Source: Salpingoeca rosetta
Lineage: Eukaryota > Protista > Choanoflagellata
Direction of reading: 5' to 3'
Length of the DNA stretch: 64,000 nt
Assembly (NCBI GenBank): GCA_033442325.1
Contig: JAWQFM010000017.1
Location: 1,043,125-1,107,124 of the forward strand
Below the pieces are notes generated by a model. It ran no database searches. It had not been told where the DNA came from and was given only the letters and a program-made list of their open reading frames with translations. Position 1 is the stretch's first letter. Each line of letters begins with the position of its first letter. This document shows positions 7,742-13,700 of the stretch, in pieces. Position numbers and translations under genes: made by a program.

Positions 7742-10700
7742 ATGAACACGGACATGGAAACCAACGGCAGAGCGGCATCCATGTCTTGGGGTAAGTCGAG
7801 GGTGTGCGCGGTGTGTGCGTGTATACTCTGTGTGTGTGTGTGTGCGTGTATACTCTGTCTGTGTGTGTGCGTGTGTGCGTGTGTGCGTGTGTGCCTGAAC
7901 ACTTCGTGTGCGCGAATACTTTGTGTGCGTGTGGTACAGTCACAGCAACAACACAACAACAACACAACAACGATGACAGTCGTCTCACTACAATTCCATC
8001 ACCACACCCCCTCCCCCACCAAACACGCAACACATCACCCGTGCCACACGCCACAGTGTGCATCCAGACGGATGCAAAGCAGACGATGATCGGGCGCTGC
8101 GGGGACGACGAGCCCAGCGTCAACATCCCCACAGTGCACCCCGGTGGCGCCGCGTGCATTGATCGCGGCAGCGTCAAAGACTGGGACGGCCTGCGGTCGC
8201 TGTGGAAGCGCGGCCTGGGCCACATTGGCGTGACCATCCAGAACCCACACGCCGTCGTCACCATGCCGCAGGTCTTCAGCACGCGAAAGAACGTGACCAC
8301 GCTGGTGAGCCTGCTCTTCCAGCAGCTGAAGGTGCCGGCCATCTTCCTCACCAACCCTTGGATTGCCGCCCTCATGAGCAACGGCGCAGTGACGGGCGTG
8401 GTCGTGCATGTGGACGACGCTGCTGCCTGCATCGCCCCCGTTGTGCGTATGCGCGTGCTGGAGGATGGCCTCTTTCGTCTTCCCTTTGGCAGCCGCGACC
8501 TCAAAAACCCACAAGTCCTGCAAGTCCTCATCAAGGTAATGCTGTCAGGTGCGGGAGTGAGTGTTGTGTTGTGTTGTGTTGTGTTGTGTTGTGTTGTGTT
8601 CTGTGCATGTGTTAGTGCGTGTACTGTGCTTGTGTGAGTGTTATGTGTGACAACATTTGGCTGTACAAGCTCATTGCATGTACTCTTGGCCCCTTGTTCG
8701 TGCTGCTGTGAAATCACCAGACGGTCTTCCAGTCCATCATCAAGTGCAACAAAGACGTCCATCGCATTCTCGCCAAACGCGTCATCCTCAGTGGCGCATG
8801 CCCAGGTTGGTGACACAGAGACGGTGTGTGTGTGTGTTTGTGTGTGTGTGTGTGTCTTGTATGTTTGTGTGTTTGTGCGTGTCTTTGTGTCTTTGTGTGT
8901 GTGTGTGTGTGTTCCTGCTTACGCACAACGTTCACTTACATCGCGTTCACGCGCATCACTGTTCATACTTGTATCTTGTGCTGCCGCAGAAAACTTTGAT
9001 GCCATCTTGGAGGCCCACCTGACGGCCAGTCTGCAACACCACAACAACGACGCGGTGAGCATGGCGGCGCTGCTATCGTCTGTGCACCTGCTGGTTTCTT
9101 TTCACTCAAAGCACACCACAAACTGTTCTGGTGTGAGCGGGAACGCATGAACACACACACACACACACACACACACACACACACACGCACACACACACAC
9201 ACACACACACACACACACACACACACACACACACACACACACACACACACACACACACACACACACACGTGACCTCACATTCGCGCTTGCGTCATGGATA
9301 GGATGACGAGTATGAAGTGCATGTTGAGTCGACGGCAACGGAAGGAAAGCTCAGCACGTGGATTGGTCTCTCTATCATCGGCTCTCTCTCCACAGCCGTC
9401 CACGAGAAGCCAGTCATCGAGGTGCGACTTCGGCGTAGATGTGCGTGTGTGTGTGTGTGCGTGTGAAAATGCGGGTGTTCATGTCTGCTGCGTGTCACTT
9501 TCTCAGCACTTGGCTCGTGTGTGCTCAAACCGACATATCCACTTGATCGTTCCAAATGCAACACCACATCCCCGCTTCCGTCGCTTCTCCTCACCCCTGC
9601 TTCCATCCTCACCCTTGCTTCACCACCACCACCATCATCACCTCAAATCCCACAACCGCCTTCACCACCACAGGATGGCGCCATTGGCGCGTACATGACC
9701 ATTGACCAGTACAAGCGCTTTGGCCCAGACTACATCTTCGCGCAGGAGCACAAGGCGGCGTCCGTGCTCGCCCCTGTTGGCCAGGGTGTGGGCACAATCG
9801 TCAGCGATGCAGAGATTGCCCGCCCGCCGAGCGACCCGCTCTGGGACGGCCCAGACCAGTTTGGTGAGGAGGGGAGGAGCCTATGGTGGTGGTGGTGAAG
9901 GTGGTGGCGGTAGTGGTGATGGCGGCGGCGGTGGTGGTGGTGGGATGTGAGGGAAGGTTGTGGAGCAGAGAGGTCGTGCTTGCTGGCGCAGGCGTGCAAC
10001 ATGCGCTTGCTTGCGCACATGTGGGATGTGCGGCGACTGAAATGCGCCTGCCTTTATCCAGGCACCTTTGTGTTTGTTCTCACCTGCAACTGTGCGTGTT
10101 TGCCTGTCCCCACTCTCTCCACGTGCTCAGTGTGCCTGTACACGGATGAGCGACGAATTCTCGGTGGGCGCTGTGGCAACGACGAACCATGCGTGAGTAC
10201 ACAGCAATGCGTGTTGTTTTCGACGCACGTGCTCTTGATCGCATCGCACGCACACATTGCTGGTTGCGGCTTCTGTGTCTTCTCATGGCCTACACACACA
10301 CTCTCACCTACACACACACACACATACACACATACACACATACACACACATACACACATACACAAACACAAACACTCACCCACATGTCCGCGTGCGGCTG
10401 CAGGTTGCCATTCCGACAGGAGAGCTGGCGCGTGGCGATGAGCCGTTCTTTGAGGCCGGCACCATCGTCGACTGGAAACACGTCTCCACAAAGTGGCAGA
10501 AGGTGCGCAGTGATGGTGATGGTGATGGTGATGGTGGCGGTTGCGATGGTGGTGGTGGCGTGTGCATGTGTCTTCGCTTGCGGTGTCATCGCGGATCGAA
10601 CTTCAGCCTCCATCGGCAATCCCATCACCACACACCACACACCACGCACCACGCACCACACACCACTCATAACAACCCTCTCCCTTGTCAATCCAACCAA

Positions 10701-13700
10701 CTTCCCCCCACCCCCTTCTCTCCCTCTCTTCCACCTTTCCACAACCAACCCGACCAACCCACCACAGGTGCTGCAGTATCTTGACGTGACGACGGGGTCC
10801 AACCACGGCCTCGTGTTCTGCCTTCCAATCCGATCAACGCGAACAGACGTGCAGCGCATTCTGCGGGTGGCGTTTGAGGAACTGCACGCACCGCGCGTGT
10901 TCCTGACCAACCCCTGGACGGCAGCCCTCATGGCCAGCGGGTGTGAGAGCGGCGTTGTCATCTGCTCCGAGTCGACGTCGACGTGTGTCGTCCCCATCAT
11001 CAACATGCAGGTGCAGGCGCACGCGCTCGTCCGCATTGCCGTTGGCGACAGTGATTTCTACGACCAGGACGTCACCATGGAGGTCTACAAGGTGGGCGTG
11101 AGCACGCGCGTGCGTGCGTGTGTGTGTGTGTGTGCGCGTGTGTGTGCGTGTGCCTGTGTGTGTGTGTGTGTGGTATCTTTTTTTGTTTTTTTTGGTTTTT
11201 GTGTGTGTGTGCGTGTGTGCGTGGAAGGCGCCGCTTCAGGCTGCTGAAGCGCCATTCTCGACACAAAAACCCTCACACATCACACATCGCACATCACACC
11301 CATGTCTTCACGCGTGCGTGCAGGCCGTGCACTCGAGCATCACGCACTGCGCGGTGGAGGTGTGGCCGCAGCTGTGGTCGAGCATCATTGTCAGCGGCGG
11401 CTGCGCGACGCACGAGGAGTTTATCGAAAACCTCGAGAGTCAGGTGCAGTGAGGGTGATGGTGAGGGTGCTGGTGCTGGTGCTGTTGCTGGTGCTGCTGC
11501 TGGTGCTGCTGCTGTTTTCCGCTCCTTGTTGCATCTTGTGTCTGTTATGTACATCACCCTTGTTCCCAAAACATAACATCTCACGTTCCAGCTTCCAACC
11601 ACCACCACCACCACAGTTGAAGCACCTTGCGGAAGCAGATGAGAGCGTGCAAGCTGCCGGGTTGACACCGCAAACTGTGATTGAGTTTGCAGCGGCCGCG
11701 CAGCTGTCGTTCTGGGTCGGTGTGTCCATCATTGGTGCGCTCACCGTCTCCATGAACGCCAGCCCCGTTATCGAGGTTGGTCGTGTCAAGGGGTTGGATG
11801 GTGCTGTCGTTGCTGCTGGGGGGGGGGGCGGTGTCTGACTGGATGGCGCTGGTGCTGGTGACAAATGATGCTGGCAGTTCCTGACGTACCTTGTCACCAC
11901 TGCTCAACAACCATCTCCAGGCACACACACACATGCACACACAAACACACACATGCACACACAAACACGCACAACACACGCACACACAACATACACAAAA
12001 CGCACACAACATACACTCACACACACACAAATCCACCACTCACGCCAATCCACTCCCCTTTCAACAACCACCATTTGTGGATGGCAGGACCAGCCTGTGG
12101 GCGTGTACATCAGCCGGGAGCAGTTTGACAAGTACGGCTCCGAGTTCCCCTTCATGCAGGAGTGTGACGGGCACGTGCTCACCATGGACAACGCGTCCGA
12201 TGTCGAGAAGGCAATCTACAAGACCACCCTCAAGATCACAGCAAGCAGGTGCAGTTGACGCGTTTGTGTGTGTGTGTGTGTGGGTGTGGGTGTGTGTGTG
12301 TGTGTGTGTGCGTGTGTGTGTTTCAGAGAGTGTGCGTGTGTGATGTGCGATGTGGGTGTGTGATGTGTAATGTGTGGGTGTGTGATGTGTGCCTGATTTG
12401 AGTGCTTGATTCGAGGGCTTTGCTGTCTTTCTCACATTGTTCCACCATTACATTTGCCGTCGTTGTTCTTTCACGAACAGGGAATCGCTCATTCCCGTCA
12501 CCAATACGCACAGCTCCAACCTCGAGGTGCACCAGGTAAGGGCGCATGGCACGCTGTGTACACACAAACAAAAGCACATTAATGCACGCCCATACCCACC
12601 CACACACACACACCCACCCACACACACACCCACACCCACACACACACCCACACACACACCCACACCCACACGCACACGCACACACACACACACACACACA
12701 CACACACANNNNNNNNNNNNNNNNNNNNNNNNNNNNNNNNNNNNNNNNNNNNNNNNNNNNNNNNNNNNNNNNNNNNNNNNNNNNNNNNNNNNNNNNNNNN
12801 NNNNNNNNCCCTTGAGCAAGATATGGAGGCTGTGTGTACTCTCGTGTTTGCAGCTCCAGTGTACGGCTGTGCGGCCCTCGGGGTCAGAGAGCATCACTGC
12901 CGTGGGGGCAGCGCGAAGCAGCAGCCGCAGCACCTGTCAAGTGGTGGTGGTGGTGGTCGAGGTGATGAACGACCACACACACACACACACACACACACAC
13001 ACACACACACACACACACACACACACACACACACACACACACACACACACACACACACACACACACACACACACAAGCCCCCACTTTGTATCCTCACAAA
13101 ACATCACCATTGTCATCAAAATCATCCATCAGGGCTGGCTGACGAAGCAAGGTGGAGGCACACGTATTCTCTCGCGCAAGAACTGGAAGCGGCGCTGGTT
13201 TATTCTGCAAGGAAACCAGCTCACTTACCACAAGAACAACATGTTCATCGTCTCACACCCGCCAACAGAGGTGCGTGTGTGCGTGTGTGTGTGTGTTTGT
13301 GTTTGTGTCTGTATGTCAGTATGTCAGTCTGTCTCTTTGGCTGCATAGTTGTCCGTCCGCATACCTGTGTGTGCATGTGCGTGTATGTGTTCCTGTCTGT
13401 GTGTCTGCACACCTGCTTGTGTACATCTACTGCGTTACTTTGCACAAGTCCGTGTGACATTCCTGACATCACCCGCTCCCGAAACATTCACCTCCCCCGC
13501 CTCTCCTTATGACTACCAACACAGGTCCGCCAGCACGCGACCGGCTCCATCAACCTTGCCGACGCGACTGCCATTGAGCCGTGGGAGGGCAAGCCGTTTG
13601 GGTTTGTCATCATCACTCCACAGCGCACCTACTACATCTACGCAGCCAGCAAGGAGGAGACAGCAATCTGGCTGCGCAAGCTGCGCAAGGCAAAGGTGCG

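Follow-up and report, generated by a model that had tools for sequence, protein, structure and literature searches.

PTSG_06637 of the choanoflagellate Salpingoeca rosetta encodes a tandem pair of actin folds reduced to subdomains 1 and 3

We describe here PTSG_06637, a gene of the choanoflagellate Salpingoeca rosetta that lies on the forward strand of a 64,000-nucleotide stretch of DNA (assembly GCA_033442325.1, contig JAWQFM010000017.1, positions 1,043,125 to 1,107,124; 'the window' in what follows) and whose product carries two actin units in tandem, followed by a PH domain. Each unit is an actin fold reduced to subdomains 1 and 3, with subdomain 2 cut to a short turn. To our knowledge, all eukaryotic actins and actin-related proteins (Arps) have four subdomains, and the PTSG_06637 family shows that the eukaryotic actin fold can be reduced to two of them and yet be kept under selection in craspedid choanoflagellates. 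What is new is a lineage-specific, doubly truncated, tandem pseudo-actin fused to predicted membrane-targeting modules. Public annotation describes the gene only as a 'hypothetical protein' or 'PH domain-containing protein', and searches of the PubMed Central open-access set and bioRxiv found no paper under its locus tag or accessions and, by keyword, no description of a eukaryotic actin without subdomain 4.

The two actin units and their missing subdomains

The public protein P0009 (PTSG_06637; EGD75568.1, XP_004992025.1, UniProt F2UFK0) matches the window exon by exon at ~100% identity in tblastn. The spliced window protein was represented in our analyses by P0009, which is identical to it, and by P0006, an 85%-identical relative. 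Both units are recognized by the Pfam Actin profile (PF00022), which skips about 128 profile positions in each: in unit 1, exon 2 matches profile positions 64-181 and exon 3 positions 310-334, and in unit 2, exon 9 matches 92-178 and exon 10 matches 310-350. Exons 2 and 9 taken singly score 57.5 and 30.6 bits, and the related proteins P0006 and P0008 score 147.6 and 118.5 bits, against a cut-off of 27. In alignments to proteins of solved structure, residues 38-167 of unit 1 correspond to actin 72-200 and residues 163-246 to actin 277-353 (chain numbering), and unit 2 aligns with Arp1 over 69-183 and then 277-343, with actin ~197-276 (~80 residues) absent from both units. Because subdomain 4 of actin spans residues 181-269, subdomains 1 and 3 totalling 249 residues (PMC7581878), the deleted stretch corresponds to subdomain 4 together with the hydrophobic-plug loop.

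Subdomain 2 is reduced as well. Between the P-x-V...PT strand and the I-(E/D)-R-G turn, unit 1 has about 8 residues versus about 37 in actin (positions 35 to 73); some 29 actin residues, including the DNase-I-binding loop (D-loop), are absent. The four-subdomain architecture of actins and Arps is accordingly lost at subdomains 2 (33-69) and 4 (181-269) alike, and the filament contact elements (D-loop, subdomain 4 surface and hydrophobic plug, 262-274) all fall inside the deleted segments. We counted these deletions in a 92-sequence alignment, over 16 units of 8 species and 64 ordinary-length actin-like proteins. The subdomain 4 window is exactly 25 residues long in 16/16 units, against 81-173 residues (mostly 93-110) in 63 of the 64 others, the exception being P0143 with 27; in the subdomain 2 window, 15 of the 16 units have 12-15 residues and the remaining one has 25, versus mostly 30-45 in the others.

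An AlphaFold model of unit 1 and the linker that follows it (P0009 residues 14-329, from the same alignment) has a predicted local distance difference test score (pLDDT) of 90.5 and a predicted template modelling score (pTM) of 0.88. It superimposes on G- and F-actin with Z 29.9 and a root-mean-square deviation (rmsd) of 1.7-1.9 Å over 259 aligned residues (model 1-284, actin 5-375). As subdomains 1 and 3 of actin amount to 249 residues, the model consists essentially of these two subdomains alone. DSSP assigns a single continuous helix across the deletion point of unit 1 (model 155-170, segment PQVLQVLIKTVFQSII). Unit 2, taken from a weaker two-unit model that we used solely for this match and not for inter-unit geometry, matches actin and Arp3 with Z 21.6 and an rmsd of 3.4 Å over 256 residues.

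The exon model, built on the + strand with GT..AG introns, has 16 exons and translates exactly into the 916 residues of P0009. Its features, in window coordinates, are as follows:

7742-14424, + strand: whole gene PTSG_06637; 16 exons, 916 codons plus stop; translation identical to P0009; RNA strand agrees
7742-7790, + strand: exon 1, start codon and residues 1-16; a phase-1 intron follows, before the 'VC' of unit 1
8057-9863, + strand: unit 1 and inter-unit linker, residues 17-329 (Pfam Actin, AlphaFold, actin fold match)
8057-8535, 8721-8805, 8990-9054, 9302-9421 and 9674-9863, + strand: exons 2-6, unit 1
8065-8079, + strand: phosphate-1 position of unit 1, QTDAK (DNGSG in actin)
8131-8157, + strand: subdomain 2 stub of unit 1, TVHPGGAAC, residues 42-50
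8407-8421, + strand: phosphate-2 position of unit 1, HVDDA (DSGDG in actin); varies among orthologues
8536-8720, + strand: intron 2, 185 nucleotides, phase 0, flanked by ...QVLIK and TVFQSIIKC; site of the lacking actin ~197-276
9761-9823, + strand: inter-unit linker motif SVLAPVGQGVGTIVSDAEIAR, residues 296-316; mostly invariant in seven orthologues
10131-12248, + strand: unit 2, residues 330-637 (Pfam Actin, PDB sequence match, fold match)
10131-10192, 10404-10502, 10768-11091, 11324-11443, 11617-11775 and 12088-12248, + strand: exons 7-12, unit 2
10139-10153, + strand: phosphate-1 position of unit 2, YTDER (DNGSG in actin); varies among orthologues
10963-10977, + strand: phosphate-2 position of unit 2, CSEST (DSGDG in actin)
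11092-11323, + strand: intron 9, 232 nucleotides, phase 0, flanked by ...EVYK and AVHSSITHC; same position and phase as intron 2
12481-12535, 13133-13270 and 13525-13695, + strand: exon 13 and the PH-domain exons 14-15 (PH domain, residues ~654-760)
13951-14424, + strand: exon 16, low-complexity tail with no Pfam domain; IKSSMV at 14404-14421, then stop

PTSG_06637 is transcribed and correctly spliced. Three stranded S. rosetta RNA-seq runs, mapped to window 7650-12900, gave reads of which nearly all have the orientation that a + strand RNA should give, at a depth of about 1-10 in exons and about 0 in introns, with GT..AG read support at six junctions, including 9054/9302 and 11775/12088. Reads cross 7790/8057 (6 reads), 10192/10404 (13) and 12248/12481 (6), and 8535/8721, at the deletion point of unit 1, is joined directly with GT..AG by 8 reads from two runs; at 12535/13133, the loose end (12536) of three reads runs into exon 14, the start of the PH domain. 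Coverage was too thin at 11091/11324, a junction that is found in the transcript-derived orthologues P0006 and P0010-P0014. In spliced transcripts of eight other choanoflagellates LIK/TVFQ and VYK/A(V/I)H are joined directly, and the independent transcriptomes of eight other species have identical junctions and intact open reading frames (ORFs) of 810-1143 residues. P0001 also joins LIK/TVFQ directly and continues from unit 1 into unit 2; it must be spliced, since its 479 residues are encoded on a 1655-nucleotide contig. Finally, neither intron 2 nor intron 9 has room for 80 codons, so a subdomain 4 exon cannot be hidden in them.

An earlier note on this DNA, made from the letters alone, had claimed that both units lack subdomain 4, that subdomain 2 and its D-loop are a stub, and that introns 8536-8720 and 11092-11323 are too short for the missing subdomain. 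The first claim is borne out by Pfam, the PDB alignments, the 25-residue window and the directly spliced reads; the second agrees with the ~8 residues left of ~37 and the 12-15 found in 15/16 units; and the third holds at 185 and 232 nucleotides. Of the checks it had suggested, structure-based alignment to actin matched the models of both units to subdomains 1 and 3 only, and RNA-seq gave direct splicing at 8535/8721, with 11091/11324 seen in orthologue transcripts. The interval it had drawn (8057-12248) does hold exons 2-12 and both units, but missed exon 1, the PH domain and the tail. The note likewise overlooked that both units are part of a single chain running on into the PH domain and the PDZ-ligand-like end, and that the gene is already annotated and belongs to a conserved family which our searches placed in choanoflagellates only.

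Two further observations concern the introns. RNA reads of the opposite strand pile up at 12811-12900, inside intron 13, at a depth of about 13-16 versus 1-10 for the host gene. They extend into a 100-N assembly gap (12709-12808) with a consistent 30-nucleotide extension, and every one of these reads departs from the assembly sequence at two sites, 12825 (G>C) and 12833 (T>C). A minus-strand ORF at 12709-12933 has weak, sub-threshold ankyrin-repeat matches, and this segment is possibly an unannotated or misplaced exon beside the gap. In addition, most of the PTSG_06637 introns read contain long (CA)n/(TG)n microsatellites (for example at 9150-9270 and 12974-13075), which yield many spurious 'CVCVCV' and 'HTHTHT' ORFs.

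Family, tandem origin and conserved sites

An exhaustive HMMER search with a tandem profile against 1.84 billion cluster representatives (one per 50% identity cluster) returned five matches below 1e-30: S. infusionum, Choanoeca perplexa, S. kvevrii (P0014, 810 residues, same architecture) and two fragments. Beyond that threshold came fragments and then a general cloud of divergent actins. Adding word searches and cluster look-ups, in sources that are mostly transcriptomes, the family comprises S. rosetta, P0006, Barroeca monosierra, Microstomoeca roanoka, S. infusionum, Choanoeca flexa, C. perplexa, S. kvevrii and Codosiga hollandica (a partial sequence). Judged by these matches, full-length relatives are found only in craspedid choanoflagellates among the 50% cluster representatives, a set from which absence from Monosiga brevicollis, acanthoecids or other particular choanoflagellates is not inferable; the exhaustive profile search of the same set brought up no animal or other eukaryote protein with this architecture. 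Salpingoeca and Choanoeca proteins are about 50% identical, with many invariant columns, and the alignments indicate that the family is under evolutionary constraint across craspedid choanoflagellates.

One match was set aside: P0003 (ENA metagenome, 249 residues) joins 46 residues of unit 1 to PF07587 (PSD1), and we took it for an assembly chimera. A separate group (P0021, P0023, P0039, P0057 and P0146; 540-740 residues) has two full-length Pfam Actin domains in tandem; these could be real fusions or merged neighbouring actin genes.

Units 1 and 2 are about 31% identical and have three intron positions and phases in common: a phase-1 intron directly before the 'VC' of each unit, a phase-0 intron at the subdomain 4 deletion point (K176/T177 and K491/A492), and a phase-0 intron after 'PVIE'. 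In a maximum-likelihood tree of the 16 units and 72 other actin-like proteins, with no genuine Arp10/11 sequence among them, the 16 units all group in a single clade (Shimodaira-Hasegawa-like approximate likelihood-ratio test, SH-aLRT, 100; stem length 0.87), and the environmental single-unit fragment P0019 falls with it. Within this clade, broadly the same species groupings recur in the subclades of unit 1 and of unit 2, with a support of only 47% for the unit 2 clade. The shared introns and the tree thus show one ancient internal duplication of an already reduced unit, before the split of the sampled species. The coincidence of deletion point and intron would be compatible with the loss of one or more subdomain 4 exons.

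The 21-residue motif in the linker between the units, SVLAPVGQG-G-IVSDA-I-R, is conserved like the actin cores in seven species and has diverged in S. kvevrii. No similarity of the motif to the actin D-loop or to any Pfam family was detected. The idea that the linker (PVGQGVG-IVSDAEI) is a relocated D-loop was not supported: a profile of eight linkers searched against ~145 actin-like proteins gave no match that was significant or consistent in position (best E value 0.08, away from the D-loop positions), in a test that is weak because the actins compared are divergent. Another candidate, P0022 (6824 residues, 25 linker matches), proved to be a coiled-coil repeat protein with a chance 'SIVSDTAI' motif.

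The phosphate-binding loops are degenerate. Neither unit has the phosphate-1 (D-x-G-[ST]-G) or phosphate-2 (D-x-G-x-G) motif of the ASKHA (acetate and sugar kinase, heat-shock protein and actin) superfamily. Both S. rosetta units have Pro at the position of Gln137, where some orthologues have His or Val; the position of His161 is Cys in S. rosetta and variable in orthologues; and both units have lost the half of the adenine pocket that subdomain 4 contributes. Most of the loop replacements vary among orthologues (HVDDA, FTNDA, HADEQ, HIGEQ, HVGQE and HTEAT in loop 2 of unit 1; YTDER, YTDGE, HTDLW and HAGGK in loop 1 of unit 2), and this variation speaks against a catalytic function conserved in the family. 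Loop 1 of unit 1 behaves differently: its Q-T-D does not vary among the seven closer species, and S. kvevrii shares the Q and the D. Both units keep the adenosine-motif segment (unit 1, ILSGA; unit 2, IVSGG), in which L-S-G and G-G do not vary. Given these loops, canonical ATP hydrolysis by either unit appears very unlikely, in line with what the earlier note had proposed; the letters that it had read at the loops (QTDAK/YTDER and HVDDA/CSEST) recur in our alignment and coordinates. Some ligand might still occupy the old nucleotide cleft, in view of the LSGG-like segment and the invariant Q-D.

Other residues at this site are peculiar to the family. Both units open with V-C and have cysteines at C18, C31 and C50 and at C331 and C344 (window 8059-8157 and 10133-10192). 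Both also read G-R-C-G-x-D-x-P in the seven closer orthologues versus A-G-F-A-G-D-D-A-P in actin (S. kvevrii keeps part of it), and N-x-W, conserved in both units, stands in place of I-Q-A at the catalytic-Gln site. These Cys/Arg and N-x-W residues may fill or re-use the old nucleotide cleft.

At the barbed-face cleft between subdomains 1 and 3, the segments L122 M123 S124 G126 V128, M148 and I252 I253 G254 S255 (P0006 numbering) are invariant in the seven closer orthologues, while S. kvevrii has other residues at three of the ten (S124, V128 and I253). The invariant columns at the cleft include LMS-G-V-G and W-GLSIIGS. Compared with actin the cleft shows Y143M, G168M, Y169R/K and M355E, and the C-terminal HRKCF is replaced; in actin, we take Y143, G168, Y169, M355 and the C-terminus to be contacts of the D-loop, the WH2 helix or profilin. 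The idea, also from the earlier note, that the units keep the barbed-end face bound by profilin, WH2 and gelsolin domains is thus borne out only in part: the cleft segments are conserved within the family, but they differ from actin at the presumed ligand contacts.

The PH domain (PF00169; 68.6 bits on P0006, 7.5e-19, cut-off 25.1) has as its best solved relative the PH domain of Myosin X (3tfm, 1.3e-18), followed by IPCEF1, DAPP1, PEPP1, cytohesins and TAPP1. Over the segment K-x-GGG-x(3)-LSRKNWKRRWF it can be aligned with Myosin X PH2, cytohesin, DAPP1 and TAPP1. Most of these relatives are 3-phosphoinositide binders. The final ~155 residues, a disordered tail without Pfam domain, align poorly among species except at the C-terminus, where S-x-V is found in 8/8 full-length orthologues (KSSMV, invariant in seven; RRSEV in S. 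kvevrii). Class I PDZ ligands follow the pattern [ST]-x-hydrophobic-COOH, which -SMV and -SEV both fit, making the C-terminus a candidate ligand by sequence. P0008 (Barroeca monosierra, EukProt) lacks the first ~26 PH residues (HQGY...QLTYHKN), probably through a gene-model error rather than a true deletion.

Possible functions of the protein

Our preferred explanation is that PTSG_06637 encodes a nucleotide-free, non-polymerising pseudo-actin pair that acts as a membrane-cortex adaptor; from the sequences and models at hand, we give this statement as a whole a probability of roughly 0.55. With the phosphate loops, Gln137, His161 and the subdomain 4 side of the adenine pocket lost, the units would be pseudo-ATPases that neither bind nor hydrolyse ATP in the canonical way. 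The D-loop, the subdomain 4 surface and the hydrophobic plug supply the pointed-face and much of the lateral contacts of a filament, and with all three deleted the units would be unable to serve as ordinary filament subunits. The PH domain, putatively of the 3-phosphoinositide type, and the PDZ-ligand-like S-x-V tail would put the protein at the plasma-membrane cortex, and the remodelled subdomain 1/3 cleft of each unit would bind a peptide or helix of some partner, most plausibly a regulator of actin or a scaffold protein of the cytoskeleton. We favour such a remodelled, family-specific ligand site over a copy of actin's own because the cleft is conserved within the family and differs from that of actin. 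The structural part of this explanation we consider close to certain, while the adaptor mechanism, each functional step of which we infer, is tentative, with the odds somewhat against it.

Several points weigh against this explanation. In the bacterial actin AlfA, the equivalent of subdomain 4 (IIb) is reduced to a short loop, yet the protein binds ATP and forms filaments (bioRxiv 10.1101/186080), so that loss of subdomain 4 alone proves nothing about polymerisation. The statement of the earlier note that the units cannot self-polymerise hence goes no further than what we infer, and the stronger case here comes from the combined loss of subdomain 2 with the D-loop, subdomain 4 with the plug, and the phosphate motifs. 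The LSGG-like segment is kept, and Q and D at the phosphate-1 position of unit 1 are invariant in 8/8 orthologues. Conservation of the cleft may reflect core packing only, as the same segments are conserved in all actins. Finally, the two-unit model, built from 7 sequences, is poor (pLDDT 62, pTM 0.42; Foldseek rmsd ~10 Å).

The main rival is a membrane-anchored pointed-end cap or nucleation template, by analogy with Arp2/3 and Arp10/11, in which the two units would lie side by side as the first two subunits of a filament, their barbed faces meeting the pointed faces of actin, tethered to a membrane rich in phosphatidylinositol 3,4,5-trisphosphate (PIP3). Arp10/11 does end the pointed end of the Arp1 filament (PMC3583065). 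Moreover, exactly the pointed-face subdomains 2 and 4 are lost while subdomains 1 and 3 are intact in both units, two units per chain match the two strands of a filament, and the PH domain is closest to that of a filopodial motor, Myosin X. However, the cleft positions that presumably receive the D-loop are changed (Y143M, Y169R/K, M355E and a new C-terminus), the subdomain 3 surface (actin 283-294) and the 322-325 loop vary among orthologues, and the cross-strand elements (hydrophobic plug, residues 191-199) are deleted. It is also general knowledge that barbed ends, not pointed ends, face the membrane in microvilli and filopodia, and the two-unit model gives no inter-unit geometry. We regard a cap or template as unlikely, if worth keeping in mind. 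A covalent 'half-actin dimer' that sits on a PIP3-rich membrane and docks onto or templates the pointed ends of filaments seems quite unlikely; if true, a minimal counterpart of Arp2/3 or the Arp11 cap, made of one chain, would have been invented among the unicellular organisms most closely related to animals, and it might organise collar microvilli or filopodia.

A protein that keeps the subdomain 1/3 face as its sole actin surface, with cleft segments invariant in seven closer orthologues (albeit with changes in S. kvevrii) and predicted membrane-targeting modules attached, might alternatively serve as a decoy or recruiter of barbed-face ligands of G-actin (profilin, WH2 proteins, cofilin, gelsolin), which it would concentrate or sequester at the membrane while providing no actin that can polymerise. 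Yet most of the positions that we take to contact profilin and WH2 (Y169, H173, 284-290, 354-355 and 371-375) are substituted or variable, and we think this improbable.

Less probable still is an active, non-canonical polymerising ATPase in the manner of AlfA, with a new mode of nucleotide binding and new interfaces. The AlfA precedent, the LSGG-like motif and the phosphate-1 position of unit 1 (Q and D in 8/8 orthologues, T in seven) would fit, but AlfA, whose filaments segregate plasmids, keeps subdomain Ib and all five actin ATPase motifs (bioRxiv 10.1101/186080), whereas the units here have neither subdomain 2 nor either of the phosphate motifs, the residues that stand in for these motifs vary in unit 2 and at loop 2 of unit 1, and a covalent tandem with a PH domain is unlike a filament former. 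That the gene is misassembled or misannotated with missing exons, or is a decaying pseudogene, as the assembly gap in intron 13 (12709-12808), the microsatellite-rich introns and the low expression might suggest, is a negligible prospect, excluded for practical purposes by the direct RNA junctions, the agreement of eight species' transcriptomes, the shortness of introns 2 and 9 and the strong conservation.

As a natural minimal actin core, the family could be used to test which actin-binding proteins need the barbed face only, to engineer non-polymerising actin surrogates, and to ask what use there is for a nucleotide-free actin fold. Because the family is choanoflagellate, carries a Myosin-X-type PH fusion and has a PDZ-ligand-like end, we consider it a candidate lineage-specific component of the membrane cortex (collar, filopodia), with relevance for the origin of animal cells. 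As S. rosetta is amenable to genetic work, these hypotheses can be put to a direct test.

Comparison with known systems

Reduced actins of another kind also exist. 'Short actins' of 230-278 residues, such as WP_323195619.1 of Nodularia harveyana, likewise retain little of subdomains 2 and 4, and their phosphate loops are altered. Unlike PTSG_06637, they are closer to ordinary actin (Pfam scores of 200-240 bits), consist of a single unit and have no PH domain; since they fall outside the choanoflagellate clade in our tree, their losses are independent. Other short actins are P0034, P0043, P0047, P0070, P0071, P0123, P0137, the C-terminus of P0044, and P0143. The N. harveyana gene (GCA_034931085.1, L001:6001-6801) is intronless and lies between glyoxalase and enolase genes on a 153-kb cyanobacterial contig, a neighbourhood that is genuinely cyanobacterial. 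The short actin P0070 adjoins a gene of DUF4457, a eukaryotic family. Microcystis ActM, at 39-40 kDa, is different from the short actins (PMC3254629).

The nearest described precedent for a missing subdomain is AlfA, which resembles the PTSG_06637 units in the loss of subdomain 4 (IIb in AlfA). Unlike AlfA, these units are also without subdomain 2 and both phosphate motifs, and the loss in AlfA is independent, as it belongs to a distant bacterial lineage. The MreB Pfam model gave no match to the family protein, which shows no affinity in sequence to bacterial actins.

Nuclear Arp pairs (actin-Arp4, Arp7-Arp9) are non-polymerising scaffolds whose barbed faces clamp an HSA helix, and the Arp modules of INO80 and NuA4 are among the structural matches of the two-unit model. 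Those pairs, unlike ours, are separate four-subdomain chains in chromatin complexes, while PTSG_06637 carries predicted modules for membrane rather than nuclear targeting. In dynactin, Arp10/11 terminates the pointed end of the Arp1 filament (PMC3583065), and in Arp11 subdomains 2 and 4 are still present and make contact with p25 and p27 (PMC8047447). In Arp10/11 and Arp2/3 a barbed face sits at the pointed end, where it blocks or templates growth (PMC3583065, PMC8047447); none of them has a tandem fusion or a PH domain. The best solved relatives of the PTSG_06637 units are actin and Arp1, with Arp11 not among the best 60 PDB matches, which gives no sign of orthology to Arp11, and by sequence the units appear to belong to none of the named Arp classes tested.

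The PH domain resembles Myosin X PH2 in its GWL-K-GGG-LSR-NWK-RWF segment; unlike Myosin X, PTSG_06637 has a single PH domain and not a split PH1-PH2 tandem. For the units themselves, actin and Arp1 are the closest relatives in both sequence (phmmer E 1e-14 to 1e-10) and structure (Z 29.9, cores at 1.7-1.9 Å), with the WIG-SI-SLS, LSGG and G-DD-P motifs still recognisable. Unlike actin and Arp1, however, they have only ~23% identity to these proteins, stand two to a chain with a PH domain attached, form a long-branched clade of their own, and have given up subdomain 4, all but a stub of subdomain 2, the phosphate loops, Gln137 and His161.

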